DNA of 64,000 nt, taken from contig NIVC01004006.1 of the NCBI GenBank assembly GCA_002269645.1, positions 1,096 to 65,095 of the forward strand, written 5' to 3'. Both the position numbers and the translations under genes were made by a program. Below, piece by piece: positions 1-54,604 of the stretch. How positions within the stretch are numbered: position 1 is the first letter of the stretch; the number at the start of each line of letters is the position of its first letter. This stretch comes from Macrostomum lignano. Its lineage: Eukaryota. The notes below the pieces were generated by a model. It searched no databases. It worked only from the letters and a program-made list of their open reading frames with translations, and had not been told where the DNA came from.

Positions 1-3000
1 GCGAGGAAAAGAAATCAATTAAGATAGGCTTGCTTTAGTAATCATTAATAGGCTATAAAGGAACCCTTTAATAGAACGTGTTCAACTAATGCTGGGTCTG
101 TTTTGAAAAGTCAGAACTCAGAAGTAGTCGCGATTAGAATCAGTATTGTCCCAATAAGTGCGACCAACAAATGCTGTTCAAAAAATAGGCCTGGCTGCAA
201 TGTCCCAATAAATGCCCAACAAATTACTAGCCTTGAGCTAGGCTGGGCTGTGTTTACTATTCAATGCGTTTGTAGCTTGTGTCCCAACAATGCCACTGAG
301 ATTGTTGCATTGCTTTTGAATTGTGCTCTACCAAGTAACACAAGTACTCTGGTGTACAATACTTCTACAGCAGATAATACTCACCCAAAACAGATCGTCT
401 CTTTCTCTTTAATCCTGTGCCGGACGGGTTTTCTTCAGATCCACCAGAAAATTCACAAAGAGACTGACTGCCTGCACGGATAGCGGCTGCTGCTGCTGCG
501 GCTTGTGAGCAGCAAGTGAACCAAATGACGGATGCAGCGGCGAGATCAGAATGCTCGCTGCTGATCGTTAAAGCGCATTCTTGTCTCTTAGGCATGTCGC
601 TGGCGTGGCTGACTTCAGAATCTGCGAGGAAAAGAAATCAATTAAGATAGGCTTGCTTTAGTAATCATTAATAGGCTATAAAGGAACCCTTTAATAGAAC
701 GTGTTCAACTAATGCTGGGTCTGTTTTGAAAAGTCAGAACTCAGAAGTAGTCGCGATTAGAATCAGTATTGTCCCAATAAGTGCGACCCAACAAATGCTG
801 TTCAAAAAATAGGCCTGGCTGCAATGTCCAATAAATGCCAACAAATTACTAGCCTTGAGCTAGGCTGGGCTGTGTTTACTATTCAATGCGTTTGTAGCTT
901 GTGTCCCAACATATCACTGAGATTGTTGCATTGCTTTTGAATTGTGCTCTACCAAGTAACACAAGTACTCTGGTGTACAATACTTCTACAGCAGATAATA
1001 CTCACCCAAAACAGATCGTCTCTTTCTCTTTAATCCTGTGCCGGACGGGTTTTCTTCAGATCCACCAGAAAATTCACAAATAGACTGACTGCCTGCACGG
1101 ATAGCGGCTGCTGCTGCTGCGGCTTGTGAGCAGCAAGTGAACCAAATGACGGATGCAGCGGCGAGATCAGAATGCTCGCTGCTGATCGTTAAAGCGCATT
1201 CTTGTCTCTTAGGCATGTCGCTGGCGTGGCTGACTTCAGAATCTGCGAGGAAAAGAAATCAATTAAGATAGGCTTGCTTTAGTAATCATTAATAGGCTAT
1301 AAAGGAACCCTTTAATAGAACGTGTTCAACTAATGCTGGGTCTGTTTTGAAAAGTCAGAACTCAGAAGTAGTCGCGATTAGAATCAGTATTGTCCCAATA
1401 AGTGCGACCCAACAAATGCTGTTCAAAAAATAGGCCTGGCTGCAATGTCCCAATAAATGCCCAACAAATTACTAGCCTTGAGCTAGGCTGCTCAGAGCTC
1501 TACCAAGTACACACAAGTACTCTGGTGTACAATACTTCTACAGCAGATAATACTCACCCAAAACAGATCGTCTCTTTCTCTTTAATCCTGTGCCGGACGG
1601 GTTTTCTTCAGATCCACCAGAAAATTCACAAATAGACTGACTGCCTGCACGGATAGCGGCTGCTGCTGCTGCGGCTTGTGAGCAGCAAGTGAACCAAATG
1701 ACGGATGCAGCGGCGAGATCAGAATGCTCGCTGCTGATCGTTAAAGCGCATTCTTGTCTCTTAGGCATGTCGCTGGCGTGGCTGACTTCAGAATCTGCGA
1801 GGAAAAGAAATCAATTAAGATAGGCTTGCTTTAGTAATCATTAATAGGCTATAAAGGAACCCTTTAATAGAACGTGTTCAACTAATGCTGGGTCTGTTTT
1901 GAAAAGTCAGAACTCAGAAGTAGTCGCGATTAGAATCAGTATTGTCCCAATAAGTGCGACCCAACAAATGCTGTTCAAAAAATAGGCCTGGCTGCAATGT
2001 CCCAATAAATGCCCAACAAATTACTAGCCTTGAGCTAGGCTGGGCTGTGTTTACTATTCAATGCGTTTGTAGCTTGTGTCCCAACAATGCCACTGAGATT
2101 GTTGCATTGCTTTTGAATTGTGCTCTACCAAGTAACACAAGTACTCTGGTGTACAATACTTCTACAGCAGATAATACTCACCCAAAACAGATCGTCTCTT
2201 TCTCTTTAATCCTGTGCCGGACGGGTTTTCTTCAGATCCACCAGAAAATTCACAATAGACTGACTGCCTGCACGGATAGCGGCTGCTGCTGCTGCGGCTT
2301 GTGAGCAGCAAGTGAACCAAATGACGGATGCAGCGGCGAGATCAGAATGCTCGCTGCTGATCGTTAAAGCGCATTCTTGTCTCTTAGGCATGTCGCTGGC
2401 GTGGCTGACTTCAGAATCTGCGAGGAAAAGAAATCAATTAAGATAGGCTTGCTTTAGTAATCATTAATAGGCTATAAAGGAACCCTTTAATAGAACGTGT
2501 TCAACTAATGCTGGGTCTGTTTTGAAAAGTCAGAACTCAGAAGTAGTCGCGATTAGAATCAGTATTGTCCCAATAAGTGCGACCCAACAAATGCTGTTCA
2601 AAAAATAGGCCTGGCTGCAATGTCCCAATAAATGCCCAACAAATTACTAGCCTTGAGCTAGGCTGGGCTGTGTTTACTATTCAATGCGTTTGTAGCTTGT
2701 GTCCCAACAATGCCACTGAGATTGTTGCATTGCTTTTGAATTGTGCTCTACCAAGTAACACAAGTACTCTGGTGTACAATACTTCTACAGCAGATAATAC
2801 TCACCCAAAACAGATCGTCTCTTTCTCTTTAATCCTGTGCCGGACGGGTTTTCTTCAGATCCACCAGAAAATTCACAAATAGACTGACTGCCTGCACGGA
2901 TAGCGGCTGCTGCTGCTGCGGCTTGTGAGCAGCAAGTGAACCAAATGACGGATGCAGCGGCGAGATCAGAATGCTCGCTGCTGATCGTTAAAGCGCATTC

Positions 3001-6000
3001 TTGTCTCTTAGGCATGTCGCTGGCGTGGCTGACTTCAGAATCTGCGAGGAAAAGAAATCAATTAAGATAGGCTTGCTTTAGTAATCATTAATAGGCTATA
3101 AAGGAACCCTTTAATAGAACGTGTTCAACTAATGCTGGGTCTGTTTTGAAAAGTCAGAACTCAGAAGTAGTCGCGATTAGAATCAGTATTGTCCCAATAA
3201 GTGCGACCCAACAAATGCTGTTCAAAAAATAGGCCTGGCTGCAATGTCCCAATAAATGCCCAACAAATTACTAGCCTTGAGCTAGGCTGGGCTGTGTTTA
3301 CTATTCAATGCGTTTGTAGCTTGTGTCCCAACAATGCCACTGAGATTGTTGCATTGCTTTTAATTGTGCTCTACCAAGTAACACAAGTACTCTGGTGTAC
3401 AATACTTCTACAGCAGATAATACTCACCCAAAACAGATCGTCTCTTTCTCTTTAATCCTGTGCCGGACGGGTTTTCTTCAGATCCACCAGAAAATTCACA
3501 AATAGACTGACTGCCTGCACGGATAGCGGCTGCTGCTGCTGCGGCTTGTGAGCAGCAAGTGAACCAAATGACGGATGCAGCGGCGAGATCAGAATGCTCG
3601 CTGCTGATCGTTAAAGCGCATTCTTGTCTCTTAGGCATGTCGCTGGCGTGGCTGACTTCAGAATCTGCGAGGAAAAGAAATCAATTAAGATAGGCTTGCT
3701 TTAGTAATCATTAATAGGCTATAAAGGAACCCTTTAATAGAACGTGTTCAACTAATGCTGGGTCTGTTTTGAAAAGTCAGAACTCAGAAGTAGTCGCGAT
3801 TAGAATCAGTATTGTCCCAATAAGTGCGACCCAACAAATGCTGTTCAAAAAATAGGCCTGGCTGCAATGTCCCAATAAATGCCCAACAAATTACTAGCCT
3901 TGAGCTAGGCTGGGCTGTGTTTACTATTCAATGCGTTTGTAGCTTGTGTCCCAACAATGCCACTGAGATTGTTGCATTGCTTTTGAATTGTGCTCTACCA
4001 AGTAACACAAGTACTCTGGTGTACAATACTTCTACAGCAGATAATACTCACCCAAAACAGATCGTCTCTTTCTCTTTAATCCTGTGCCGGACGGGTTTTC
4101 TTCAGATCCACCAGAAAATTCACAAATAGACTGACTGCCTGCACGGATAGCGGCTGCTGCTGCTGCGGCTTGTGAGCAGCAAGTGAACCAAATGACGGAT
4201 GCAGCGGCGAGATCAGAATGCTCGCTGCTGATCGTTAAAGCGCATTCTTGTCTCTTAGGCATGTCGCTGGCGTGGCTGACTTCAGAATCTGCGAGGAAAA
4301 GAAATCAATTAAGATAGGCTTGCTTTAGTAATCATTAATAGGCTATAAAGGAACCCTTTAATAGAACGTGTTCAACTAATGCTGGGTCTGTTTTGAAAAG
4401 TCAGAACTCAGAAGTAGTCGCGATTAGAATCAGTATTGTCCCAATAAGTGCGACCCAACAAATGCTGTTCAAAAAATAGGCCTGGCTGCAATGTCCCAAT
4501 AAATGCCCAACAAATTACTAGCCTTGAGCTAGGCTGGGCTGTGTTTACTATTCAATGCGTTTGTAGCTTGTGTCCCAACAATGCCACTGAGATTGTTGCA
4601 TTGCTTTTGAATTGTGCTCTACCAAGTAACACAAGTACTCTGGTGTACAATACTTCTACAGCAGATAATACTCACCCAAAACAGATCGTCTCTTTCTCTT
4701 TAATCCTGTGCCGGACGGGTTTTCTTCAGATCCACCAGAAAATTCACAAATAGACTGACTGCCTGCACGGATAGCGGCTGCTGCTGCTGCTGCTGCTGCT
4801 GCTGCGGCTTGTGAGCAGCAAGTGAACCAAATGACGGATGCAGCGGCGAGATCAGAATGCTCGCTGCTGATCGTTAAAGCGCATTCTTGTCTCTTAGGCA
4901 TGTCGCTGGCGTGGCTGACTTCAGAATCTGCGAGGAAAAGAAATCAATTAAGATAGGCTTGCCTTTAGTAATCATTAATAGGCTATAAAGGAACCCTTTA
5001 ATAGAACGTGTTCAACTAATGCTGGGTCTGTTTTGAAAAGTCAGAACTCAGAAGTAGTCGCGATTAGAATCAGTATTGTCCCAATAAGTGCGACCCAACA
5101 AATGCTGTTCAAAAAATAGGCCTGGCTGCAATGTCCCAATAAATGCCCAACAAATTACTAGCCTTGAGCTAGGCTGGGCTGTGTTTACTATTCAATGCGT
5201 TTGTAGCTTGTGTCCCAACAATGCCACTGAGATTGTTGCATTGCTTTTGAATTGTGCTCTACCAAGTAACACAAGTACTCTGGTGTACAATACTTCTACA
5301 GCAGATAATACTCACCCAAAACAGATCGTCTCTTTCTCTTTAATCCTGTGCCGGACGGGTTTTCTTCAGATCCACCAGAAAATTCACAAAGAGACTGACT
5401 GCCTGCACGGATAGCGGCTGCTGCTGCTGCGGCTTGTGAGCAGCAAGTGAACCAAATGACGGATGCAGCGGCGAGATCAGAATGCTCGCTGCTGATCGTT
5501 AAAGCGCATTCTTGTCTCTTAGGCATGTCGCTGGCGTGGCTGACTTCAGAATCTGCGAGGAAAAGAAATCAATTAAGATAGGCTTGCCTTTAGTAATCAT
5601 TAATAGGCTATAAAGGAACCCTTTAATAGAACGTGTTCAACTAATGCTGGGTCTGTTTTGAAAAGTCAGAACTCAGAAGTAGTCGCGATTAGAATCAGTA
5701 TTGTCCCAATAAGTGCGACCCAACAAATGCTGTTCAAAAAATAGGCCTGGCTGCAATGTCCCAATAAATGCCCAACAAATTACTAGCCTTGAGCTAGGCT
5801 GGGCTGTGTTTACTATTCAATGCGTTTGTAGCTTGTGTCCCAACAATGCCACTGAGATTGTTGCATTGCTTTTGAATTGTGCTCTACCAAGTAACACAAG
5901 TACTCTGGTGTACAATACTTCTACAGCAGATAATACTCACCCAAAACAGATCGTCTCTTTCTCTTTAATCCTGTGCCGGACGGGTTTTCTTCAGATCCAC

Positions 6001-6040
6001 CAGAAAATTCACAAATAGACTGACTGCCTGCACGGATAGC

Positions 6041-6073
<33 letters not shown>

Positions 6074-8612
6074 GGCTTGTGAGCAGCAAGTGAACCAAAT
6101 GACGGATGCAGCGGCGAGATCAGAATGCTCGCTGCTGATCGTTAAAGCGCATTCTTGTCTCTTAGGCATGTCGCTGGCGTGGCTGACTTCAGAATCTGCG
6201 AGGAAAAGAAATCAATTAAGATAGGCTTGCCTTTAGTAATCATTAATAGGCTATAAAGGAACCCTTTAATAGAACGTGTTCAACTAATGCTGGGTCTGTT
6301 TTGAAAAGTCAGAACTCAGAAGTAGTCGCGATTAGAATCAGTATTGTCCCAATAAGTGCGACCCAACAAATGCTGTTCAAAAAATAGGCCTGGCTGCAAT
6401 GTCCCAATAAATGCCCAACAAATTACTAGCCTTGAGCTAGGCTGGGCTGTGTTTACTATTCAATGCGTTTGTAGCTTGTGTCCCAACAATGCCACTGAGA
6501 TTGTTGCATTGCTTTTGAATTGTGCTCTACCAAGTAACACAAGTACTCTGGTGTACAATACTTCTACAGCAGATAATACTCACCCAAAACAGATCGTCTC
6601 TTTCTCTTTAATCCTGTGCCGGACGGGTTTTCTTCAGATCCACCAGAAAATTCACAAAGAGACTGACTGCCTGCACGGATAGCGGCTGCTGCTGCTGCGG
6701 CTTGTGAGCAGCAAGTGAACCAAATGACGGATGCAGCGGCGAGATCAGAATGCTCGCTGCTGATCGTTAAAGCGCATTCTTGTCTCTTAGGCATGTCGCT
6801 GGCGTGGCTGACTTCAGAATCTGCGAGGAAAAGAAATCAATTAAGATAGGCTTGCTTTAGTAATCATTAATAGGCTATAAAGGAACCCTTTAATAGAACG
6901 TGTTCAACTAATGCTGGGTCTGTTTTGAAAAGTCAGAACTCAGAAGTAGTCGCGATTAGAATCAGTATTGTCCCAATAAGTGCGACCCAACAAATGCTGT
7001 TCAAAAAATAGGCCTGGCTGCAATGTCCCAATAAATGCCCAACAAATTACTAGCCTTGAGCTAGGCTGGGCTGTGTTTACTATTCAATGCGTTTGTAGCT
7101 TGTGTCCCAACAATGCCACTGAGATTGTTGCATTGCTTTTCAATTGTGCTCTACCAAGTAACACAAGTACTCTGGTGTACAATACTTCTACAGCAGATAA
7201 TACTCACCCAAAACAGATCGTCTCTTTCTCTTTAATCCTGTGCCGGACGGGTTTTCTTCAGATCCACCAGAAAATTCACAAAGAGACTGACTGCCTGCAC
7301 GGATAGCGGCTGCTGCTGCTGCGGCTTGTGAGCAGCAAGTGAACCAAATGACGGATGCAGCGGCGAGATCAGAATGCTCGCTGCTGATCGTTAAAGCGCA
7401 TTCTTGTCTCTTAGGCATGTCGCTGGCGTGGCTGACTTCAGAATCTGCGAGGAAAAGAAATCAATTAAGATAGGCTTGCCTTTAGTAATCATTAATAGGC
7501 TATAAAGGAACCCTTTAATAGAACGTGTTCAACTAATGCTGGGTCTGTTTTGAAAAGTCAGAACTCAGAAGTAGTCGCGATTAGAATCAGTATTGTCCCA
7601 ATAAGTGCGACCCAACAAATGCTGTTCAAAAAATAGGCCTGGCTGCAATGTCCCAATAAATGCCCAACAAATTACTAGCCTTGAGCTAGGCTGGGCTGTG
7701 TTTACTATTCAATGCGTTTGTAGCTTGTGTCCCAACAATGCCACTGAGATTGTTGCATTGCTTTTCAATTGTGCTCTACCAAGTAACACAAGTACTCTGG
7801 TGTACAATACTTCTACAGCAGATAATACTCACCCAAAACAGATCGTCTCTTTCTCTTTAATCCTGTGCCGGACGGGTTTTCTTCAGATCCACCAGAAAAT
7901 TCACAAAGAGACTGACTGCCTGCACGGATAGCGGCTGCTGCTGCTGCGGCTTGTGAGCAGCAAGTGAACCAAATGACGGATGCAGCGGCGAGATCAGAAT
8001 GCTCGCTGCTGATCGTTAAAGCGCATTCTTGTCTCTTAGGCATGTCGCTGGCGTGGCTGACTTCAGAATCTGCGAGGAAAAGAAATCAATTAAGATAGGC
8101 TTGCCTTTAGTAATCATTAATAGGCTATAAAGGAACCCTTTAATAGAACGTGTTCAACTAATGCTGGGTCTGTTTTGAAAAGTCAGAACTCAGAAGTAGT
8201 CGCGATTAGAATCAGTATTGTCCCAATAAGTGCGACCCAACAAATGCTGTTCAAAAAATAGGCCTGGCTGCAATGTCCCAATAAATGCCCAACAAATTAC
8301 TAGCCTTGAGCTAGGCTGGGCTGTGTTTACTATTCAATGCGTTTGTAGCTTGTGTCCCAACAATGCCACTGAGATTGTTGCATTGCTTTTCAATTGTGCT
8401 CTACCAAGTAACACAAGTACTCTGGTGTACAATACTTCTACAGCAGATAATACTCACCCAAAACAGATCGTCTCTTTCTCTTTAATCCTGTGCCGGACGG
8501 GTTTTCTTCAGATCCACCAGAAAATTCACAAATAGACTGACTGCCTGCACGGATAGCGGCTGCTGCTGCTGCGGCTTGTGAGCAGCAAGTGAACCAAATG
8601 ACGGATGCAGCG
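1..8612. repeat. Tandem array of ~624-bp units (about 13.8 copies, truncated at window start)
   Basis: The motif gcgaggaaaagaaatc recurs at 1, 624, 1245, 1797, 2420, 3044, 3667, 4291, 4930, 5555, 6198, 6823, 7447 and 8072. Homology stops at 8612. Copies differ by a few SNPs and indels, GCT tract length and one ~72-bp deletion. Confidence 0.99.
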
Positions 8613-8640
8613 TTGTAAATGCAGGATGCAGGATGATTGG
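385..8640 (-). CDS. Partial gene built of tandem symmetric (phase 1-1) exons encoding a 79-aa repeat; function unknown
   Basis: Predicted exons 8458-8640 (183 nt, unique 5' part), 7833-8069, 7208-7444, 6584-6820, 5941-6195, 5316-5552, 4676-4927, 4052-4288, 3428-3664, 2805-3041, 2182-2417 (236 nt, 1-nt deletion), 1558-1794, 1006-1242, 385-621. Each repeat exon has the acceptor cttaattgatttcttttcctcgcag|AT and the donor TTGG|gtgagt. Repeat: DSEVSHASDMPKRQECALTISSEHSDLAAASVIWFTCCSQAAAAAAAIRAGSQS(I/L)CEFSGGSEENPSGTGLKRKRRSVL. No transcript evidence available. Confidence 0.65.
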
Positions 8641-8779
8641 CTGTTGTAAATTAATTGATAAATAAGGTGATCGTGCCGCCTCTCTTATATTTCACTGAGC
8701 TCAGAGTATTACTAGGCTGCTTATTATTTTTTTCAACGTACAAAAAATACGACATATACGAGTACGAGACAATACTTAC

Positions 8780-8797
8780 TGGACAATGAAGGCAAAT
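8780..8797 (-). CDS. Candidate 18-nt phase 1-1 micro-exon upstream of the exon array
   Basis: Minus strand ttttcttctataacaaacag|ATTTGCCTTCATTGTCCA|gtaagt. Canonical acceptor and donor, length divisible by 3, and in phase with exon 8458-8640. Confidence 0.4.
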
Positions 8798-10404
8798 CTG
8801 TTTGTTATAGAAGAAAACGGTAGCTTATCGATATCAACGTATCTGGAATTTTAGAAAAGTACATATGTAAATTCCAGTTAAGTTTTTATTTAATCATAAA
8901 ATTTTAAAAAGAATTTTAAATTCTACTTACATATGTGTAATGGTTCCTAGCCAAGTCTTTTCATGCCAGGTCATGCATGGAAACTCTTGTGACGTGGCAC
9001 ATTTTGTCTGTGTAGTGCAGGTCTCGTAAATGAATTATATTCGCTTGAACATATGCAGTACCGCCAGTACGCCGTTTGTCAAAGGGAACTTCTACATGTA
9101 CCTTTCCGTTAGAATTGGCTCTTCCTCTTGTAGGCCTCAACTTCAGTGTAAACTTTATCCCGACTCCCTTGCGCCCGCCTCTCCTCCCCGCTTCCCCCCG
9201 CCGCGATAGGAATGTACGCGTGGCCTGGGTAAGGGATTGCCTGGGTCTTGTACACGCTTGTCCTAACACTTCTGCACTGTACGTGGGTTTATCTTTACGA
9301 TCCAAGATAAGCAGAATTGTTTTCCAGGAAGGCCTAGTAGTTAGTTTTGGGCCAAACTAGTCATCGATTTCGACTTTACAGTGACAGTGACACGCAAACA
9401 TGTGCTAGCAGTCCATGCAGTCATCTTAAGTTTCTTGGTATCTCAGTACATTTCAGTATACCAGACGATAATTATCATAATTCTAGGAAAAATTTTTCTA
9501 CATAGTATAGCTGCCCAAACCCAGGCCAATAAGGAAGTCATTTAAAGCCTTAGAGATTAAACGTTTCCCTCTAATACTCGTCCTCGGTTTTCTCGGGAAA
9601 TGCAAAGTTTTTCTTTGCCCTTTATTTCTTTGCTCTAAAAGCGCTTCATAAGACTGTGAGAATTTCCACCGGAAAACTACCTCACTCAAAGTGTCACTTT
9701 ACGTTAATGGCCTCCAGTCACTAACTTGAGTCAGTTAATACCCATTCACATATGACAAATAGATTAATGCAGCTGACTGAAAACGAGAATTTCAGTTAAA
9801 ATGGCCGAGGGCACAGGCGGATGTAACCTTAATTTGCCATGTTTCGTGTATAAGTGAAATTGGAAGCTAATGAATTTAGATGCTAGCTGTTTCTATGCAA
9901 AAATCTAAATATACTAAATCTATAAGGTTTGTATGCTTGATTGTAATATTCTAAATCTGTATTAAATTATTTCATATTTAGTAAACACGATGCCAAATGT
10001 CAGTGGATCCTTTCAAGTGTTGATTGGCAGCCCTGTAGGGAACCTTTATCTGTTACTTGTAGTAGACTTTCTTGATATTGTAAGAAATATTGTAATAAAA
10101 CGAGAATTCCGATTTGAGACCCAATTGTTCTGTTGGATCAGACCATCAGTTCGCATAATTTTTTAAACTTCTTAGGACACTGCAAATCATTAGATTCCCC
10201 GTGTTTGATTAAAAATATGAAAAAATGACATTGATTTTTGAAAGGAGAATCGAAAGACGGTTCCAATGAATATTTTTTCATTTCAATAGAATTCATTTTT
10301 GGAAGTGTCGGGACGCACTTATTGGGCCTGGCCCAACACATTTTTGGTCCTAATAGCACGGGTCAGTTTATACACGCTTGTCCGAAGAAATGCCTAATGC
10401 ACAA

Positions 10405-10608
10405 ACACGCAGTCATACGCACAGGCACACACTCACACAGGAGTGTACAGCGGCCCTAACTTTATTTACCGTTAGGCATGTACACTTCATTGCACGAGCA
10501 GAGCCAAGCCGAGATTCCAATTTAACCCCAAATTTAATGCGACTTTGAATCGACCCTGGGCCGCTGGCACATTGGCACTCCGCGCTCGACCACTAGGGTG
10601 CGGCCCCC
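10405..10608 (-). mobile_element. tRNA-derived SINE (copy 1)
   Basis: Minus 5' end gggggccgcaccctagtggtcgagcgc...ccagggtcgattc has A/B-box-like motifs. The body matches 14922-15152 and carries the shared core gtgtacatgcctaac...gttagggccgctgtacac. Confidence 0.75.
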
Positions 10609-10642
10609 AATGTAACTTATATAAGCCATAATGCCGCAATCT

Positions 10643-10652
10643 CAACAACAAT

Positions 10653-10694
<42 letters not shown>

Positions 10695-10739
10695 AACAAT
10701 AACAACAATAACATCAACAACAATAACAACAACAACAGT

Positions 10740-10820
<81 letters not shown>

Positions 10821-10829
10821 AATAATAAT

Positions 10830-10864
<35 letters not shown>
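10643..10864. repeat. (AAC)n microsatellite, probably the 3' tail of the adjacent RTE element
   Basis: About 220 bp of aac with occasional aat, starting exactly at the 3' end of the minus-strand RTE fragment. Confidence 0.95.
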
Positions 10865-11458
10865 AATACGCGTTCAGCGTCACAGGGCGCGCCTCAAGGC
10901 CAAGTCGCCAGCCGAATCCGGTGCGCCGGCGTCAGCCAGCAGGCAGACGGTGCCTGCAACGGTGCCTGCAGCGTCAGCAGCAGCACCTGCTGCATCGGCT
11001 CTGTGCAGTACAACTCGGCGCGGATGATGTGGCCTGCCAGCTGGAGTCGCCGACGGCGCAACAGGTCGCTTGGACGGACCAGGCCGGTGCGGTGATACAA
11101 AGCCGCGTTGGTCACTCGCTCGTAGCCGATCTTGAAGGCAGCGCGCAGCTGGCCAGCGTGCGCCGCGTCAACTTGTTGCTCGAGCGACTCCGTCAGCGTC
11201 CAGGTCTCGGCGTTGTACAGCAGGACGGTCTCGATCACCGCCTAGAACAACGCCTTTCTCTGGTCTCGGACTGCAGGACTGCCCTCGCAGAACGAAAGGC
11301 AGCCCAGGCAAGCCCGCGGCGACGCCGCAAATCCACGCGGACGCCGGGAACCAGACCGCTGAGGTAGACGAACTGCTGAGAACGCGGAAGCTCTGTCGCC
11401 TGTCCATCAGCGCCTCGGCACAAAATCGCAGCCTCGATGTCGTCCGGCACGCAGAGCG
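10865..11458 (-). mobile_element. 5'-truncated RTE-clade non-LTR retrotransposon fragment (RT C-terminus)
   Basis: Minus translation gives QFVYLSG..DLRRRRGLAWAAF, then after a frameshift ETVLLYNAETWTLT...VTNAALY...RRRRLQLAGHIIR. These are the motifs of the RTE ORF C-terminus. A short-repeat tail follows. Confidence 0.85.
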
Positions 11459-11935
11459 CAATATCAGAAACATAAACTTGAAATCAACAAGCTAATACGA
11501 GCTATTTACCCATTTTTAATCCTTAGCGGAGTTTAATCTTTAATCCTAAGGACAGCTAACTTCATGTCGACTATAACCAGACGCAACGAATATTTTTGCA
11601 GCATTTACATGTAAGCCCAACGAGACTATTTCCACAGGTGAGCTTATATGAAGTTTACTCGTGGACAGCCTAAGGTGAAGCGTAAAGGTGCTCACAGTTT
11701 GATCAAGTTCTTACGGCAAATTTTGGGCATCAACTACAAATTAGGCATGTATATAAATAAGTAAATGAAACAAAACCGTAATTAGCGAAGTAAAATGTTT
11801 TATTTATTATATACTCTTTTCCTCTAGTATATATTAGCCGTGATTGGAATTAACGGCTGCATCAATTAGCTATACTTCAACCTGGTGGTTCACATTCTCT
11901 ATATCGATGGTCCATACACCGCTCTCCAAGCCAGC

Positions 11936-12751
11936 TTAGGTGTACCGGTTGATGAAGCTGGCGTAGCGCACAACATTGGCATACAGGGAGGTGGTGGAGC
12001 TGATGCCAGAGTTCACGCCCAGCTGGTAGTAGGTGCTGCCACTCCTGTACACCATCGGGCCGCCGCTGTCGCCAAAGTAGATGGAATTGGGCTGGCGGGA
12101 GCTGCAGAAGTAGGCGGATCCGCAGCCAGAACGGGTCAATGTGGTCTCGGCGTAGTTCAGAACGTTTGAAATGCCGTTGTGGTCGCCGCCGTAGCCCATG
12201 CTGATGATGGCGGAGCCGGCGCTGGGCTCGGAGCCGCTGAACAGCGCGATCGGCTGGACATTGCTGTTGAAGGCGATGTCGCTGCTGGTCTTCAGGACGG
12301 CCAGATCGTAGTCGCGAACGACGGCGCAGCCGCTGCCGGTGGGGTAGCCGGGGTAGATGTAGGTGTTGGAAACCCGGTAGCTGGTGCCACGGCCAGCGCG
12401 GACGGTGCCGACCTGTCAATAAAGAGTCACGCGAACAGCTGCTTGAAAGCTTCTAAATATATGCTGCCAGCTGGAACTCAAGCACTACAAATTCTTACTC
12501 AATACAGGTGGCTACTCCGCCGTATCAATTTTACTGTTGACTCACCTCAACGCTGCTCGGCGCCCGGTTGCAGACGCAGTGAGCGGCAGTCAGAATGGTT
12601 CTCTTGTTGAGAACAGAGGCGGAGCAGCCGGAGATCTTGGCCATCCAGGGAATTGGCCCAAGGCGGCATTCTGTCCGTTGAGGATGTAGCTGTCCAGAGG
12701 GTTGGCAGCAGCCACCGCCAGCAGGCAGGCGAGCGCAATCAGAAACTTCAT
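11936..12751 (-). CDS. Secreted S1A (chymotrypsin-fold) serine protease, 2 exons, with a 1-nt frameshift in exon 1
   Basis: Exons 12546-12751 and 11936-12412, intron GAG|gtgagt...ttattgacag|GTC. Signal peptide MKFLIALACLLAVAAA, mature N-terminus ILNG, and triad motifs TAAHC, DLAVL, GDSGGP. Exon 1 is 206 nt: one C is missing in the run at ~12648-12650 (TTC CC TGG). Confidence 0.9.
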
Positions 12752-13399
12752 TTCCGGTTTGATTGAACCAGTGTGCGACACCGAGATTGAAGAACGAACC
12801 GATTCACTGTTGCTGTTCGAATTGCTTCTCCCAGCGACACGCAGGCATATTTATTTAGAAGTTGCCGACGTGAGGAAAGCAGATTTTTGCTTGGGAACAA
12901 AGCACGCGTCAACGGCGACAACTTTGCAATTCAGATAAGCTGCTTGCAATAGCTCAATTGTGCTATTCGAATTTTCTATTGAAGCATTGTAACGGCCCAT
13001 TGGATAAATTTTTAACACTCTTATCGCTGGTTCGAGTAGCGCGTGCGCTTCTCGGTTCGTTTTTCGAAAAGTTTCCCAGCTTTTGATTGAATAAGCGAAT
13101 GCAGTTTGCGAGTGTTTTGAATTTTTGCTGAATAATGCTCGTAGCTTTGAAGTTGCTGGTTTCTGCAGAGTTTAAACATTCTGCTTTTCATAGAATTCTG
13201 CTATTAATGTTCAATTTTTAAGTTAGCTTTCGCGTGTCCATCTCATCTTATTCTAATTCGGTGCATGGAAAACAAAAGTACATGTATATTTCACATTATG
13301 GCATGCGTCCTATTTGTGATTTCTGTGTTTTATTTAACTTAGACTGATGCGGAGGAGCAACATCAGTCCCAGAATCGTGGAACATATGCTAGGCCCATG

Positions 13400-13560
13400 G
13401 GCTTGTGATCGAAGCAAATAGACAAAGGTGAACACCCAAAGGACATTGCGATGTTGCTGAATATAAAAGAAAAGACGGTTTACAGCATCCGTCAGCGCGT
13501 TGAAACCACTGCAGCAGAGATCCTCTGCGAAGGGGCGGCAATCGCCAAAGCAAGTTGCCT
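13400..13560 (+). pseudogene. Possible decayed Tc1/IS630-like transposase N-terminal HTH remnant
   Basis: One frame reads IDKGEHPKDIAMLLNIKEKTVYSIRQRVETT, then shifts to RRGGNRQSK. This resembles the IA..L.I...TV..I HTH plus GRP-like linker. Short and motif-level only. Confidence 0.35.
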
Positions 13561-13799
13561 AATGAATATCTAATGGTCTATTTTCGATTCGCTGATGGAT
13601 GGAGAGCTGAGCCATAAACTAAATTTCATGAGAAGAAGGCGAGAAAGAAATTGTTCACTTTAATATGGGGCGAGGGTCTCGAGGCGAGCGAAGCCATTAC
13701 ATGCAACCTCTGACTTTCTGACCACAGAATGCGCATTATAAAGCCATTATCTTATACTCGTAATTGTAATTCAACCCTTTGTTGTGAAGGCCGACCGTA

Positions 13800-14215
13800 C
13801 AACTGAAAGCTACAGCTTCCAAGTTCATCCAGGAAGGTGGCTCGGTGAAGCAGCGTTGTGCAAATGCGAAAGCAGACCTAGAGAAATTGCGCGTCTACTT
13901 TGACAGGAGTACACCGGTAAAGTTGCAGCAGGAAATGTACTTTGTGTTGGAATTTCACCTTTGGACTGCGAAGACGCGAATGGCTCCGTAAGCTGACGGT
14001 AAATTAAATTCCATTTAGAGATGTACAACCAATGGACGACGAACATTTAGACTGGCACCTATGGAGACCAAACATGCCCGTGGAAGTTTAGAGACGCGGA
14101 CTTCAGAAGATCGGAAGCAGAGCGTGCTTGTTGTAAAGTTTGAAAGCAGGTGTCCGAATGAGTGCGTGAATCTCTACCTGAAGAAGATCGAAGAGGCAAA
14201 GAGCAATTGGCTTGA
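13800..14215 (+). pseudogene. Decayed Crypton-type tyrosine recombinase (DUF3504-like) fragment
   Basis: LKATASKFIQEGGSVKQRCANAKADLEKLRVYFDRSTPVKLQQEMYFVLEFH, then a frameshift to FGLRRREWLRKLT*, then ETKHARGSL...RCPNECVNLYLKKI. Matches the D.L..L..YF...TP..LQ / FG.R.RE / CP...LYL pattern of DUF3504 and Crypton proteins. Confidence 0.65.
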
Positions 14216-14584
14216 TCCGCATACCTCTAATAACCCCTCCAAAATGATACAATCAACAACACGCGTCGAGCCTCTCTCTGCTCTCTGGATTAACCATGGC
14301 CACATTTTATTCCACACAAAACACATATGGACAAAATACAGCATTCATGAACACATTGGTATATTTATTAAATCAATAGAACAAACTTACTATTTACTAC
14401 GAGTATTAGAGCTGATAAGTAAGCCAACTACTTCTATTCAAGAAGTTAGCTTAAGAATTCTAGAAAAGCAATACATATTTGGGAAGTCAGCAGAAAGTGT
14501 TCCATACATATGCACATACAGTACACTGATAAGCAAATGCTCTGACGATCTGGCAAATCGATTAGAGTTCTACCCATACGAGTA

Positions 14585-17500
14585 TCAGGTGCAGAACGCC
14601 TTGGACACGGTGCAGGCGTCGCAGACAACTCGAAACGGTTGCCGCAGCAGCCGGCAAGTCTTCCTCTTGCACTCCGGATGCGTGCCCGGGTAAGTGACCG
14701 AGCGAACGCTGTACGGCCTGCCGCAGCACATCACGCTGCAGAGAACCTCCCTGCGGTACTGGCTGCTGTCTTCACTTGGCAGGCCCTTCAGCAGGCTCTG
14801 ACCGACAGGCGTGTTATCTGGGAGGCACTCTCTGTGACGGGTTAGGCATGCAGTGTGACAATGTTAGATTGTTGAACAAGTTCAGCTCAGCCACATTCTA
14901 AACAAATGAGCGCGCGGATACGTACGCAGGCACACACTCACACAGGAGTGTACAGCGGCCCTAACTTTATTTTTATCGTTAAGCATGTACACTTCACTGC
15001 GCCTTGCGGGGTTGGCTCTCAAGGCCGTTAATTGCACGAGCAGAGCCAAGCCGAGATTCCAATTCAGCCTCAAATTAATGTGACTGCACTTGGAATCGAG
15101 CCTGGGTCGCTGGCACACCAGAGCAGCTGCGCTACCGCTGGGCTACGGCCCCCTATGTATCAAGGACTACTCAAGTAGAAAGTTTTCAAGCCTGGCGCAC
15201 CTTCCATGCGTGACGGAGCAGTAATCCAGCGAGTGTTCATGAAATAGTAAAAGCGTCTTCTTTGGCAGCCCTTTGACAATCCGGTGACCAATGCATCGGG
15301 GACCAAGCGACAGAGGGTTCGTTGGCTGATGGTTACCGAAAGCGGCGTCCGGACAGAGCTCCTCGTATCCTGCGTAGCCTGAGCGATCGAATATGGCCCT
15401 GCGCATCTGGTGCTAGAAGTGAGGGACGAATTTTCGGAGGTGATTATAGCTGCGATTTCTAATGCAGAGTGACAAGAGCCGCGGATCTCTGCATACGGAT
15501 CAGTAAAGATGCAGAGTGACAAGATCATAAAGCCTCGGATCTCTGCATACGGATCAGTACAGATAGATGTAGAGTGACAAGATCATAGAGCAGGATCTCT
15601 GCATGCGGATCAGTACAGATAGATGTAGAGTGATAAGATCATAGAGCAGGATCTCTGCATGCGGATCAGTACAGATGCAGAGTGACAAGATCATAGAGCC
15701 CCGGATCTCTGCATACGGATCAGTACAGATGCAGAGTGACAAGATCATAGAGCCCCGGATCTCTGCATACGGATCAGTACAGATGCAGAGTGACAAGATC
15801 ATAGAGCCCCGGATCTCTGCATACGGATCAGTACAGATGCAGAGTGACAAGATCATAGAGCCCCGGATCTCTGCATACGGATCAATACAGATGCATAGTG
15901 ACAAGATCATAGAGCAGGATCTCTGCATACGGGTCAGTACAGATGCAGAGTGACAAGATCATAGAGCCCCGGATCTCTGCATACGGATCAATACAGATGC
16001 AGAGTGACAAGATCATAGAGCAGGATCTCTGCATACGGGTCAGTACAGATGCAGAGTGACAAGATCATAGAGCGGGATCTCTGCATGCGGATCAGTACAG
16101 ATGCAGAGTGACAAGATCATAGAGCCCCACGGATCTCTGCATGCGGATCAGTACAGATGCAGAGTGACAAGATCATAGAGCGGGATCTCTGCATGCGGAT
16201 CAATACAGATGCAGAGTGACAAGATCATAGAGCGGGATCTCTGCATGCGGATCAATACAGATGCAGAGTGACAAGATCATAGAGCGGGATCTCTGCATGC
16301 GGATCAATACAGATGCAGAGTGACAAGATCATAGAGCGGGATCTCTGCATGCGGATCAATACAGATGCAGAGTGACAAGATCATAGAGCGGGATCTCTGC
16401 ATGCGGATCAATACAGATGCAGAGTGACAAGATCATAGAGCGGGATCTCTGCATGCGGATCAATACAGATGCAGAGTGACAAGATCATAGAGCGGGATCT
16501 CTGCATGCGGATCAATACAGATGCAGACTGACAAGATCATAGAGCGGGATCTCTGCATACGGGTCAAGTCACAACTCCAAAACCGAAAAAACTATCACTG
16601 TCACTCACCGTGTCATAAATTCGCATCAAAACGTCCAAAGGATTTTTCCCAGTCCTATGAAACAGACTACCAGCCAGGAGCAGGGGCTTCTCCTGCTGCT
16701 GCTGATTCTCCAGCTGCTGCCACCAGGAGCCTCCGACAGCTCCGTAGTGCAGCACTCGATGACAGGTGCGCACAGAACAGGCTGCACTAGTGCCGTGGCA
16801 TTTGCACCTCACTGCCTCGGCGTGTCGAGTCGCCCTTATCCCGACCTGATAGTTGTGACCGTTCACCAGTTCAGTGAACTGCTCGAAGGCTTCCTCTACT
16901 GGCACGTCTGTCGATGTTGACGACCAAGAAGGCGTCTTTAAGCTTCGTTTAAGTCGACCAAGCGACAGGAATTTTCTGGTCAGACGGGTTCCAGCTCGAA
17001 GGCTCCTGTCGCAACCGTTGGACTTGAAACTGTCAAGCCGGAAGCCGGCGGGAAGTTTGGCAGCAAGCCAGCCAGGCGGCGCAACTGCAGCGGCCGCTGA
17101 ACTCTGCTGACGGCCCCGGCATGAGCACCGGCTGATGCGTCCTTTGGCGCACTCCCCCGCCATGGTGAGGGTCAGGACGAAGCCGGACAGAGCTCGGACC
17201 ATGGCGTGCTCCGCTGTCACTGGAAATGCATGAGGCTACATATGCATACAACTATGCTTTTGACTCAGAAGCTCAGCGGTAAACTAATCTGGCTCTCTGG
17301 CTGCGACCCCTGGTTCGATTCAACACGAAAATTGACCGATATAGGTTGTCGTTAGATTCACAACCCATTAGGGCCGACCCCCAGGACACAGAGACTGTAC
17401 ATGCCTGACGATTAGAAAGTCAGGGTCGCTGTACACCCTGAGTGAGCGTGTGCATGAGTGCGTGCATCGGTAGGAGTCACCGAAGGCGTTACGTCAGGAT

Positions 17501-38800: not shown

Positions 38801-39717
38801 TTCTGGAAAAAAAGATGCAGCAAATGCAAACTACGATCGTACGAGCGTACGTAGACAAGCCTGAAAGCTTCCATGCTTATACGTATGTACAAAGCTTGGC
38901 TGTGAGCACGCTCACTCACAAATGGCGTATTTACCCTTAACTATACAGCACAGTAGGCGTCATAGAGCTACTGTAGATCCAGGCCCTCGTCCGCTCGTAT
39001 TGTAAGCAAGAACAATAGCTATTCTATACTGTAGCTACTCAACTCATACAGCCCTTGTAATTCGACTAGCTGAGCAATGTACAGCTTAGATGGGAGCCTA
39101 TTTACTAACGGTGAGTATCTTTGTGGCCATGGACTGGACAGTAAAAAGGAATGATGCATAGGCTGGAATTGAGATGGATTGAGATAGTACACTTAAACTT
39201 AAGCAATTTGATGGGCGATAATTTTGCTTTCGTCTCTTTTATAAAGACCATTCTTTATCCGAAAACTTAATTATACCATTTCGGTCGATGTCGCAATAAA
39301 AAAAACAATTTATATAATTAGCGACTACGCAATTGTTTACGCAATGCAACACAATTTTTCAACCGGATAATGATCACCTCCGTATAGTTTTGGCTACAGC
39401 TACTTGTAGAAATGACACAATACTGATACATATCTTTGTTACCAATGGGTTGCACAACAGTTCTTTAACATTCGCTAAGATTTTAAAGAACACTAGCAAT
39501 CTACGCCCCCCCGTTGGGGAGCCAAAGAAATGCAATACACGTTTTTTTAATAAGCTACATGTATCCTTGAAATCTTAAAAAAATCTCCTGTCAAACCTTG
39601 TAAGCCTTGACATGTCAGTAATTCCCCCCCACAAGCTTTAACATATCAACTTCCCCCCTTGACATCTCAGCAATGCCCCCAATAAGCCTTGGAAATCTAA
39701 AAATATCTGTCAACCTT

Positions 39718-39810
39718 CTAACCCTAACCCTAGCCTAACCCTAACCCTAAACCTAACCCTAACCCTAACCATAACCCTAACCTAACCCTAACCCTAACCC
39801 TAACCCTAAA
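39718..39810. repeat. Interstitial telomere-type repeat (TAACCC)n
   Basis: About 15 units of ctaacc with variants. A more degenerate echo is at ~40185-40230. Confidence 0.9.
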
Positions 39811-40624: not shown

Positions 40625-41518
40625 TACATGACACCCTTCATGTCTGACATGACGCTTCTTTTATTCTACCATGATGCTTCCTTATTTTTTAAATGACGCT
40701 TCTATAATTTTTTACATGACGCTTCTATGATTTTTACATGACGCTTCTATGATTTTTACATGACGCTTTAATGATTTTTTCATGACGCTTCTATGATTGT
40801 TTACATGACGCTTCTATGATTTTTTACTTGACGCTTCTATGTTTTTTTACATTACGCTTCTATGATTTTTTTCATGACGCTTCCATGATTTTTACATGAC
40901 GCTTCTATGCTTTTTACATGACGCTTCTATGATTGTTTACATGTCGCTTCTATGATGGTTTACATGACGCTTCTATGATATTTTACATGACGCTTTAATG
41001 ATTTTTTCATGACGCTTCTATGATTTTTTACATGACGCTTTTATGATTTTTTACTTGACGCTTCTATGATTTTTTACATTACGCTTCTATGATTTTTTCA
41101 TGACGCTTCCATGATTTTTACATGACGTTTCTATGATTTTTACATGACGCTTCAATGATTTTTACATGACGCTTCAATGATTGTTTACATGACGCTTCTA
41201 TGATTTTTTACATGACGCTTTAATGATTGTTTACATGACGCTTCTATGATTTTTTCATGACGCTTCTACGATTTTTTACATGACGCTTCTATGATTGTTT
41301 ACATGACGCTTCTATGATTGTTTAGATGACGCTTCTATGATTGTTTACATGACGCTTCTATGATTTTTTACATGACGCTTTAATGATTGTTTACATGACG
41401 CTTCTATGATTGTTTACATGACGCTTCTATGATTGTTTAGATGACGCTTCTATGATTATTTACATGACGCTTCTATGATTTTTTGCATGACTATTCTATG
41501 ATTTTTTACATGACGCCT
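40625..41518. repeat. 22-24-bp minisatellite inside element A
   Basis: Unit ttttacatgacgcttctatgatt, about 38 copies. Confidence 0.96.
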
Positions 41519-42782: not shown

Positions 42783-42879
42783 CAATAAGTAGCTAGAGCG
42801 ACAATTTCCTTAGCTTTATAGTGGCTCCTTTAAATTGGCATGGCGCTTTATACCTTTACATTTGAAATTGTATATCTTG

Positions 42880-45800: not shown

Positions 45801-46280
45801 TCACATATATGTTTGACATGGTGGCTCCTAAATGTTTGACATGGTGGCTCTTTATGTTTGACATGGTGGCTCTTTTATGTTCGACATGGTGGATCTTTTT
45901 TGTTCTACATGGTAACTCTTTTATGTTTGATACGGTGGCTTTTTAATGTCTGACATGTTGGCTCTTTTATGTTTGACATGGTGGCTCTTTATTGTTCGAC
46001 AAAGTGGCTCTTTTGTGTTTGACATGGTGGCTCTTAATTGTTTGACATAGTGGCTCTTTAATGTTCAAAATGGTGGCTCTTTAATGTTCGAAATGGTGGC
46101 TGTTTTATGTTTGACATGGTGGCTCTTTTATGTTTGACATGGTGGCTCTTAAATGTTTGACATGGTGGCTCTTTAATGTTCGACATGGTAGCTCTTTAAT
46201 GTTCGACATGGTAGCTCTTTTATGTTGGACATGGTAACTCTTTTATGTTCGATATGTTGGCTCTTCTATGTTTGACATTG
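42880..46280. repeat. 20-22-bp minisatellite inside element B (3.4 kb)
   Basis: Unit tttgacatggtggctctttaatg with many variants, about 160 copies. Confidence 0.98.

Positions 46281-50735: not shown

Positions 50736-54604
<3,869 letters not shown>

Follow-up and report, generated by a model that had tools for sequence, protein, structure and literature searches.

In human NBPF genes, a lineage-specific and dispersed multi-copy family, Olduvai (DUF1220) exon doublets form arrays; the Olduvai module is an acknowledged protein domain for which expression and selection are documented, and its units span several kilobases and two exons. The kringle IV-2 coding VNTR of human LPA resides at a single locus and consists of 5.6-kb two-exon units that encode a folded kringle. 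In the D4Z4/DUX4 and RS447/USP17 macrosatellites, whose arrays lie on several chromosomes, each unit holds a self-contained open reading frame. Insect Baramicin, apidaecin and neuropeptide polyproteins are multi-peptide precursors cut at furin sites; their repeats are usually contained in one or a few exons, their signal peptide is clear and their processing has been demonstrated. Internal repeats also occur in DINE-TR1/Helentron-associated, Tetris and foldback elements, where they are not known to be spliced exons.

The window considered here is a 64,000-nt stretch of the Macrostomum lignano contig NIVC01004006.1 (positions 1,096 to 65,095). We think it probable that its positions 1-10408 hold, on the minus strand, a spliced gene-like cassette restricted to M. 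lignano, not so much an established protein-coding gene as a very young, fast-turnover gene family or proto-gene. The minus strand of 1-8611 is a tandem array of 13 complete exon-plus-intron modules and an opening partial one. In a typical module, an AG acceptor and a GTGAGT donor delimit an exon of ~237 nt (phase 1-1), and an intron of ~387 nt comes next. All 14 donors read G^GTGAGTA (caret, exon boundary) and all 13 acceptors ttaattgatttcttttcctcgcag^; in the following list, the lower coordinate of each exon, from 8458 down to 385, is the last exon base before a donor, and the higher one, from 8069 down to 621, is the first exon base after an acceptor.

1-8611, minus strand: tandem array of ~624-bp modules, truncated at window position 1
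385-621, minus strand: module exon 13, 237 nt, then an intron reaching window position 1
1006-1242, minus strand: module exon 12, 237 nt; the preceding intron in the sense of transcription (1243-1557) has only 315 nt
1558-1794, minus strand: module exon 11, 237 nt
2182-2417, minus strand: module exon 10, 236 nt, one nucleotide deleted in a T run, with frameshift and stop
2805-3041, minus strand: module exon 9, 237 nt
3428-3664, minus strand: module exon 8, 237 nt
4052-4288, minus strand: module exon 7, 237 nt
4676-4927, minus strand: module exon 6, 252 nt, poly-Ala +5
5316-5552, minus strand: module exon 5, 237 nt
5941-6195, minus strand: module exon 4, 255 nt, poly-Ala +6
6584-6820, minus strand: module exon 3, 237 nt
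7208-7444, minus strand: module exon 2, 237 nt
7833-8069, minus strand: module exon 1, 237 nt, phase 1-1; the first ATG in frame lies here (MPKRQE...)
8458-8611, minus strand: partial module that opens the array (module positions ~83-237) and runs to the first donor
8612-8637, minus strand: 26-nt filler, ATCATCCTGCATCCTGCATTTACAAC, at the site of a ~700-bp deletion, as compared with paralogous loci
8638-10408, minus strand: conserved single-copy 5' part of the cassette
10409-10489, minus strand: TG-rich border plus ~80 bp, the left edge of the cassette

Each module exon has a single open frame whose first two nucleotides are the tail of a split codon, so that the exon is in phase 1 at both ends, as the sequence-only reading had proposed; it translates as (D)SEVSHASDMPKRQECALTISSEHSDLAAASVIWFTCCSQAAAAAAAIRAGSQS[I/L]CEFSGGSEENPSGTGLKRKRRSVL. 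That reading had seen in a 624-bp satellite an array of exons, all of 237 nt and free of stops. The exon-plus-intron modules are real, but their spacing runs from 621 to 643 bp with one exception of 552 bp, and the length of 237 nt applies to ten of the 13 exons, the others having 252, 255 and 236 nt. In the two longer ones, the additional length is an in-frame (GCA)n, or poly-Ala, expansion. Exons are open ahead of 2182-2417, where the loss of one nucleotide causes a frameshift and a stop within the exon, and hence the spliced open reading frame has 852 codons. Counting substitutions only, modules of the window array are 99.8% identical. The 13 copies go back to a single event and do not count as independent. 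Position 1 had been called a further acceptor; the window in fact stops 2 nt short of its AG, which nevertheless indicates that the array runs on leftward.

The beginning of the array has to be redrawn. What had been taken for a unique opening exon (8458-8640) is the partial module plus the filler, and its proposed acceptor at 8640 coincides with the ~700-bp deletion junction that is apparent against seven paralogous loci. At these loci the first-exon acceptor is gcgcccacgcacag^GTTC, unlike the one proposed at 8640, and the window copy is devoid of the ~700 bp containing this native acceptor. The upstream splice junction that had been predicted, CCA^CCAATCAT, depends on a deletion junction specific to the window copy and is not supported. 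The loss at its 5' end may impair this copy.

Nor is the array a single gene, as had been supposed, but one of the many copies of a dispersed family, whose gene models comprise Mlig029855 copies numbered up to g39, Mlig026960, Mlig003618 and Mlig033615. The same cassette occurs at at least eight other M. lignano loci with unrelated flanks, except that L006 and L010 are duplicates and that the flanks of L001 and L005 share another repeat ('R'); cassettes also occur inside the spans of other genes. A 2.5-kb 5' part comes first, then the module array and last a terminal exon that contains a stop codon and AATAAA; (TG)n marks either border, and the borders are the same from locus to locus. The 5' part at 8638-10408 is found at 97-98% identity in L001, L002, L004, L008 and L011, and the segment 10409-10489 is common only to some copies (L008, partly L002). 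Arrays in L001-L011 start at module position 68 and end at ~178-186, the first exon of the family is intact in six of seven loci, and the stop codon lies 76-120 nt upstream of AATAAA in six of six. The number of modules varies from 7 to more than 20 among these paralogues, in support of the sequence-only reading. Modules are 99.4-99.96% identical within arrays and 98.7-99.9% between them, array-specific fixed variants are present, and the similarity between loci is about twice as high for the arrays, in their exons and in their introns, as for the single-copy 5' part. A diverged subfamily (P0033/P0028), only 53% identical, has kept unit length, frame, junction and the block GLKRKRRSVL. All 30 protein matches come from M. 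lignano, and HMMER, run exhaustively against 1.84 billion representatives, gave eight matches, every source-traced one from M. lignano, with no homologue found outside this species.

That the modules act as exons, the central claim of the sequence-only reading, is supported by RNA-derived coding sequences that match joins at the proposed acceptor and donor. The Mlig_3_7 coding sequences were built from RNA-seq, de novo transcripts and TransDecoder (PMC5730564). Mlig029855 and other NCBI models have exactly the splice sites predicted for the modules, and three independent RNA-derived coding sequences use exactly these junctions; P0007 is reproduced exactly by module joins (L001 10001-10112 + 10500-10745 + 11133-11197), and P0004 ends precisely at an in-frame TAG. 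The supporting models are partial, and many look as if a single ~390-nt transcript had been mapped again and again. Annotation derived from RNA-seq at paralogous arrays indirectly shows that the cassette is transcribed on the minus strand and that neighbouring modules are cis-spliced. Since the modules are all identical, the junction k-mer proposed earlier is the same for linear unit-to-unit splicing and for back-splicing.

It is unproven that the modules are protein-coding with a functional repeat protein. Among 113 modules, variant sites amount to 10/213 in exons versus 26/387 in introns (Fisher p=0.37), and the exon substitutions (8 nonsynonymous, 1 nonsense, 2 synonymous, close to the 73/5/22% expected at random) reveal no measurable protein-level constraint or purifying selection. 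A W-to-TAG variant has spread to 11 of the 15 modules of array L003, and the frameshift in 2182-2417 interrupts, in the window copy, the continuous long reading frame that had been envisaged. Between 0 and 41% of the modules per array are frameshifted; part of these frameshifts may be homopolymer errors of long-read assembly. The indel frequency of exons is about half that of introns (p=0.008, for events that are not independent), and neutral simulations kept the frame between subfamilies A and B in 13% of cases. The module protein contains no Pfam domain, and AlphaFold predicts one helix (residues 21-49), the remainder being of low confidence.

It could be argued that the arrays nonetheless encode a functional secreted polyprotein, a flatworm analogue of multi-peptide precursors, from which furin-type convertases free 79-residue repeats at RKRR, module number setting the dose. 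Each module indeed ends in K-R-K-R-R followed by S, of all 10-residue blocks only GLKRKRRSVL is fully shared by subfamilies A and B, several models bear the UniProt auto-name 'Secreted protein', the gene ends in an orderly fashion with a stop and then AATAAA, and indels are rarer in exons. However, the substitutions follow a neutral pattern, homogenisation has carried a nonsense variant through one array, and a hydrophobic helix repeated in every module would be odd in a secreted precursor. Moreover, the conserved purine-rich AAGAGAAAGAGACGA might just as well act as a splicing enhancer at the exon 3' end, the structural model is of low confidence and homologues were not found beyond M. lignano. 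We therefore consider this scenario doubtful.

Less likely again is a non-coding, splice-competent tandem repeat in a mobile or recombination-prone cassette, its open frame being a captured gene fragment in decay, and its products spliced long non-coding RNAs, circular RNAs or nothing functional. The dispersal with fixed borders and unrelated flanks, inside the spans of other genes, would fit, as would the absence of measurable coding constraint, the tolerated stops and frameshifts, the greater similarity of arrays than of the 5' part, and a short motif (TTGGGAC/GCACTTATTGGG) common to the intron and both cassette ends. Yet no TIR, LTR or target-site duplication is demonstrable in the cassette (the TIR alignment score of 29 was equalled by the best shuffle), and, judged by length, no transposase or reverse transcriptase is evident in the 5' part, where no open reading frame exceeds 88 residues. 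The symmetric phase, in-frame ATG, stop with poly(A) signal and frame retained in the diverged subfamily are also gene-like.

It is very unlikely that chance produced the exon-like signals of a satellite and that the gene models amount to annotation noise. The ab initio models that UniProt has for the ML2 assembly do mix frames and invent junctions, and all modules were copied from one event, but three independent coding sequences share exactly these junctions, and the first and terminal exons are conserved. Furthermore, the remaining 107 kb of the window, both strands counted, contain a single candidate with a pyrimidine-rich CAG acceptor and a GTRAGT donor around an open frame of 150-300 nt, which gives a chance of roughly 1% per 624-bp unit. 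Flatworm spliced-leader (SL) RNA and other small-RNA genes typically form ~0.6-kb tandem units, but an array of such genes, which only unit size, tandem layout and a strong donor would suit, is refuted by SL and Rfam searches and hardly conceivable: the 35-nt M. lignano SL (PMC8629364) is absent from the window even allowing three mismatches, the unit has no Rfam match at the gathering threshold or at E<=1, no tRNAs were found, and the 237-nt segment is bounded by an acceptor as well as a donor.

We thus return to the young, gene-like cassette as the most appealing scenario. Tandem amplification of a 624-bp module, made up of a symmetric 237-nt phase-1 exon and a GT-AG intron of ~387 nt, is evident in the DNA, within an older two-exon segment, and would have proceeded by unequal recombination or slippage. 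Each array follows a dedicated first acceptor, starts at module position 68 and closes at module position ~180 inside the terminal exon with its stop codon and AATAAA. Concerted evolution has homogenised the arrays, and many unrelated genomic sites have received a copy of the whole cassette. Translation would begin at the first AUG in frame, which lies in the first complete module (MPKRQE...), yielding a low-complexity polypeptide of 79-residue repeats, each with one Ala-rich hydrophobic helix, disorder on both sides and RKRR at its end. Protein length would then follow the number of intact modules ahead of the first frameshift or stop, predicting 783 residues from the first Met for the window copy.

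With Baramicin, apidaecin and neuropeptide precursors the cassette shares tandem repeats that end in R-X-K/R-R and vary in number, but the M. lignano repeats sit on separate exons, and their processing is at best putative. It resembles DINE-TR1/Helentron-associated, Tetris and foldback elements in being dispersed, with ends that are fixed and a tandem array inside that varies in length, but terminal inverted repeats, a hairpin, target-site duplications and an autonomous partner are not demonstrable in it. As in D4Z4/DUX4 and RS447/USP17, the arrays are satellite-like, with units that carry gene parts and evolve in concert, although here the units are exons spliced to each other. Compared to LPA, the M. 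lignano arrays are spread over many loci, the repeat is disordered and the frame often broken, but both consist of near-identical tandem units of whole exons and introns, with frame-keeping lengths and a protein length that follows copy number. The module differs from that of NBPF in being a single 237-nt exon with no domain and no detectable constraint; as in NBPF, the family is lineage-specific, dispersed and multi-copy, and its exon-plus-intron modules are spliced in frame, vary in copy number by paralogue and are strongly homogenised. The cassette belongs among the exon-array and coding-macrosatellite genes.

On the minus strand of the window, each tandem unit comprises a whole exon and intron, with canonical GT-AG sites in 13 of 13 complete modules. 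The array displays 13 acceptors (…ttaattgatttcttttcctcgcag/, the slash marking the splice site) and 14 donors (G/GTGAGTA), and the exon-module anatomy with strong acceptor and donor, which a sequence-only reading had described, is borne out. The consensus splice motifs of M. lignano are GT[G/A]AG and CAG (PMC8629364). Limited to periods of up to 500, Tandem Repeats Finder does not detect the array; a repeat finder returns 300-nt blocks from position 1 to about 8700, spaced 621-643 bp apart except for one spacing of 552 bp, indicating that the tandem repetition stands, but not the uniform unit of 624 bp. In 12 of 13 window modules (237, 252 or 255 nt), the exon is divisible by 3 in length and has equal phase at both ends. 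The proposed spacing of 237 nt, or 79 codons, applies to 10 exons, but neither to those of 252 and 255 nt (n=2), whose extra length stems from (GCA)n, a poly-Ala expansion, nor to the single exon of 236 nt (2182-2417). The module exon has just one open reading frame, which starts with two bases of a split codon, so that both exon ends are in phase 1. After splicing, the window product stays open for 852 codons, 783 of them counted from the first Met (located in the first complete module); the claim of an in-frame array without stops holds this far, but a frameshift then leads to a stop inside the 236-nt exon. Window position 1 is 2 nt short of the next acceptor AG, confirming that the array extends leftward. 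The 13 modules are copies of a single event and therefore provide no independent evidence; exon-like configurations of this quality occur once in the remaining 107 kb (both strands of the window). The predicted module-module junction is GTTTTGG/ATTCTGAAG in the window and in L001, a fetched locus with a paralogous cassette, and GTTTTGG/CTTCTGAAG in most other arrays, with AGSQSICEFSGGSEENPSGTGLK and SVLDSEVSHASDMPK as predicted tryptic peptides of the repeat protein.

The Mlig_3_7 gene models at NCBI were built from RNA-seq (StringTie/TACO), a de novo transcriptome and TransDecoder (PMC5730564). The BOX15_Mlig029855g13 CDS (P0007) is the exact join of L001 10001-10112, 10500-10745 and 11133-11197, its junctions being the acceptor and donor predicted beforehand, and another model, P0004, ends precisely at the in-frame TAG of its own array. 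Since both match the predicted module joins, there is transcript support for unit-to-unit splicing: the modules act as exons at the predicted splice sites, and the RNA-seq-derived models of paralogous arrays indicate, indirectly, that they are joined to one another in RNA. The exon array thus stands, but not the single gene of interchangeable exons to which it was assigned, as there are many loci and the gene copies of transcript cluster Mlig029855 are numbered at least to g39. Many Mlig029855 models resemble one transcript of ~390 nt, mapped over and over along arrays. In the UniProt models (ML2 assembly), reading frames are mixed and names misleading. Those composed solely of the module repeat (P0012, P0023-P0027, P0029, P0030 and P0049) are often in the wrong frame (poly-Gln), and their names (Dymeclin, UCH domain, BAF250_C, Rho-GAP, DRIM) look like spurious automatic annotation.

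The modules belong to a dispersed cassette, whose window copy spans 1-10408 (minus strand) and whose parts, apart from the array, are as follows.

Parts of the cassette flanking the module array
5' part, ~2.46 kb: single-copy, no ORF >88 aa
First exon: own acceptor gcgcccacgcacag/GTTC…; encodes SSAFKLAAASVI[W/Y]FTCC…RRSVL; intact in 6 of 7 loci
Terminal exon: two alleles, ending …IRAGSQLIDEFSG[R/G]AGYFLSF or …ICAAVS before the stop; AATAAA 76-120 nt past the stop
3' part, ~0.9 kb

The array starts at module position 68 in every locus, ends at module position ~178-186 wherever the end falls within the fetched locus, and holds from 7 to more than 20 modules. Both cassette borders adjoin (TG)n, in the order (TG)n-TTTGTGCATTAGGCA … GTGCACGTTTG-(TG)n, and the dispersed copies have identical termini and unrelated flanks (six copies at the left border, six at the right), except that L006 and L010 are duplicates and that the flanks of L001 and L005 share another repeat ('R'). 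The L001 cassette lies within repeat 'R' and within the span of an antisense TIR-domain gene; that of L008 lies ~4 kb downstream of the span of a cathepsin-L-like gene model. The L004 cassette (5437-14806, NIVC01001124.1) is in sense orientation inside the span annotated for a myosin heavy-chain gene, with a Myosin_head fragment upstream at L004 2198-2755. Each module intron (e.g. window 6821-7207) contains three to five copies of a short motif (TTGTTGGGAC / GCACTTATTGGG), which recurs, partly inverted, at cassette ends (L001 6284-6304, 15318-15420 and 15985-16040), its sites there being the 5' end, a 38-bp triple repeat of the 3' part, and a stretch close to the 3' end. RNA folding of the intron gave no unusual structure (z = -0.02), and a scan of the 5' part for bacterial-type promoters and terminators, a scan type irrelevant to a eukaryote, stayed at shuffle level.

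Compared with the seven loci that show the region, the window copy lacks ~700 bp between the 5' part (to 8638) and the array (from 8611), replaced by a 26-nt filler of local microduplications. The unique exon said to open the array (8458-8640) is therefore wrong: its acceptor (acaacag/CC at 8640) is a piece of the conserved 5' part, whose counterpart in other copies lies 700 bp from the array, and it abuts the array only through the deletion. Since the family's true first-exon acceptor is deleted from the window copy, the proposed CCA/CCAATCAT junction is unsupported. The window copy may be transcriptionally impaired.

The family appears confined to one species. All 30 matches to a two-module protein query (30/30) are from Macrostomum lignano, and when 1.84 billion cluster representatives were searched exhaustively with a profile, only 8 matched, of which all that were source-traced are M. 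lignano. No Pfam family matched the repeat protein: for window-type modules (subfamily A) a Bd3614_N hit below threshold is noise, and for P0033, a member of the diverged subfamily B, Ykof is nominally just above the cut-off with no significant stretch. No description of the module array was found in the searchable literature on M. lignano satellites or exon arrays, and the module gene IDs have zero occurrences there and in supplements of M. lignano papers. Identity between modules is 99.4-99.96% in the same array and 98.7-99.9% across arrays; divergence among the single-copy 5' parts of these cassettes is 1.4-2.4%, with only 0.3% for the L001/L004 pair. Arrays have private fixed variants, such as an intron A-to-T change in all window modules and in 0 of the 3 arrays first compared; H/D versus N/A haplotypes are further array-specific variants. 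Such variants are the mark of concerted evolution, in which some exchange between loci is probable.

Is the array also maintained as a coding sequence? Its gene-like traits are the symmetric exon, an in-frame ATG and an orderly gene end. Subfamily B (P0033 and P0028; UniProt A0A1I8HX90 and A0A1I8FV09, ML2 assembly), with 80-aa units 53% identical to A, keeps frame and junction, has a similar terminal exon and fully conserves the block GLKRKRRSVL; its DNA is absent from all fetched loci. In a neutral simulation at the A-B divergence, the open frame was retained in 13% of trials. Across 113 modules of 10 arrays, variable sites number 10/213 in the exon and 26/387 in the intron (Fisher p=0.37), and indel events per nt per unit are 0.00083 and 0.00153, respectively (p=0.008, the events not being independent); this roughly halved exon rate hints weakly at selection or at an effect of homopolymer content. 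Exon substitutions comprise 8 nonsynonymous, 1 nonsense and 2 synonymous changes, the random-mutation expectation being 73%, 5% and 22%, and homogenisation has carried the nonsense change (TGG to TAG) into 11 of 15 modules of the L003 array. Frameshifted modules make up 0 to 41% per array, some of which may be long-read errors. Frame upkeep and purifying selection across the array were not seen among the compared modules, in a test of low power because the copies are ~99% identical. The codon-usage score, trained on 2,331 codons of Pfam-supported ORFs of the window, is 0.114 for the unit, as compared with 0.174±0.10 for coding and 0.086±0.17 for open non-coding sequence; codon usage is therefore uninformative. 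AlphaFold predicts one helix (SEHSDLAAASVIWFTCCSQAAAAAAAIRAG) in the repeat unit, flanked by low-confidence segments (pLDDT 62.7, pTM 0.32). RKRR/S at the end of every module forms R-X-K/R-R delimiters that are conserved in subfamily B. For the conserved purine-rich sequence behind KRKRR, three roles are conceivable: convertase cleavage, nuclear localisation or exonic enhancement of splicing; the only secretion label is the automatic UniProt name 'Secreted protein'. Our reading is that the module family is very young and that its ORF is translated, if at all, under no detectable constraint.

The cassette could have spread by microsatellite-mediated duplication or as a microsatellite-targeting mobile element. 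No convincing TIR was found: inverted alignment of the cassette ends scored 29 at best, against a shuffle mean of 17.1 and a shuffle maximum of 29, so that the signal equals that of the best shuffle. The cassette showed no LTR-like direct repeat, and its borders no clean target-site duplication; as both abut (TG)n, any such duplication would be hidden. A search for a transposase or reverse transcriptase by ORF length in the 2.5-kb 5' part found no ORF >88 aa, and the repeat protein carries no Pfam domain. That the cassette is an actively spreading vehicle, with an array of symmetric, strongly spliced exons that expands by itself, strikes us as improbable. If it were, a sense insertion in an intron could add in-frame repeat modules to host mRNAs, exon shuffling would be caught in the act, and cassette transcripts could yield a secreted polyprotein tuned by copy number, abundant circular RNAs of a single exon, or both. 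Classical non-coding satellite DNA shares with the array its head-to-tail monomers, high identity and concerted evolution, but the two differ: complete arrays are short (4.6-12 kb, 7 to ~20 units) compared with the very long arrays of such satellites, and RNA-based models make use of the splice sites. An SL-RNA or small-RNA gene array is dismissed, as the M. lignano spliced leader (sequence from PMC8629364) is missing with ≤3 mismatches and Rfam and tRNA scans are empty.

The window surrounding the cassette holds the following coding features.

Coding features of the window outside the cassette
11936-12199 and 12590-12781, minus: trypsin-like serine protease C-terminal exon (Pfam Trypsin, E=3e-6) and likely signal-peptide exon
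16564-17220, minus: Wnt exon
28250-28984 and 29303-29827, plus: MFS_5 (MFSD5-like) transporter, two exons
33808-35256, plus: ORF with Schlafen AlbA_2 domain
50682-53807, plus: 1041-aa intronless ORF with teneurin-type EGF domain, running into (TCTG)97 (53782-54170)

The trypsin-like exons sit between the Wnt exon and the cassette. Directly upstream of the cassette border is an ORF at 10643-11473 (minus), which has no Pfam match and which we take to resemble the C-terminal tail of a non-LTR retrotransposon (LINE) reverse transcriptase; a (TTG)74 tail, (CAA)74 in plus-strand reading, comes after it. That the array lies within the neighbouring Wnt gene is rejected, since the trypsin-like gene and this ORF intervene. 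An interstitial telomere-type (TTAGGG)n tract (39718-39809, CTAACC on the plus strand) abuts a repeat (39492-39809 overall) that is 98% identical to the insertion-site sequence of the L001 cassette (L001 5900-6167); L005 15084-15715 is an insertion-free copy of the repeat hosting that cassette, its junction not being clean. Minisatellite arrays make up about a quarter of the whole window. Among them are long arrays of 23-bp units at 40647-41516 (38 copies, 84-92% identical to L001 and L005 flanks) and 42875-46296 (148 copies), and 14-bp units at 47614-47933 and 48425-48788, ~490 bp apart, whose units CAACTGCCAGCCGA and TTGTCGGCTGGCAG are reverse complements, making this a foldback-like inverted pair.

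The anatomy first described is real, with RNA-level support, and its interpretation needs three changes: many loci, a frame often broken, and a different opening exon. Simple and tandem repeats account for ~15% of the M. lignano genome (PMC5730564), and what a repeat masker would label a 624-bp satellite is a spliced transcription unit at many loci of this model flatworm. One repeat supplies the pieces annotated as 'hypothetical protein' in dozens of models (Mlig029855.g1-g39 and others) and as UniProt entries misnamed Dymeclin, UCH and Rho-GAP; RNA-seq quantification across them meets a multi-mapping problem. The family offers a natural system for the birth of a repetitive gene by exon-module amplification, for concerted evolution that spreads benign and nonsense variants in a coding array, and for a spliceosome facing runs of identical splice sites (exon skipping, back-splicing). 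In kind, it resembles the exon-array gene families NBPF/Olduvai and the LPA KIV-2 VNTR.
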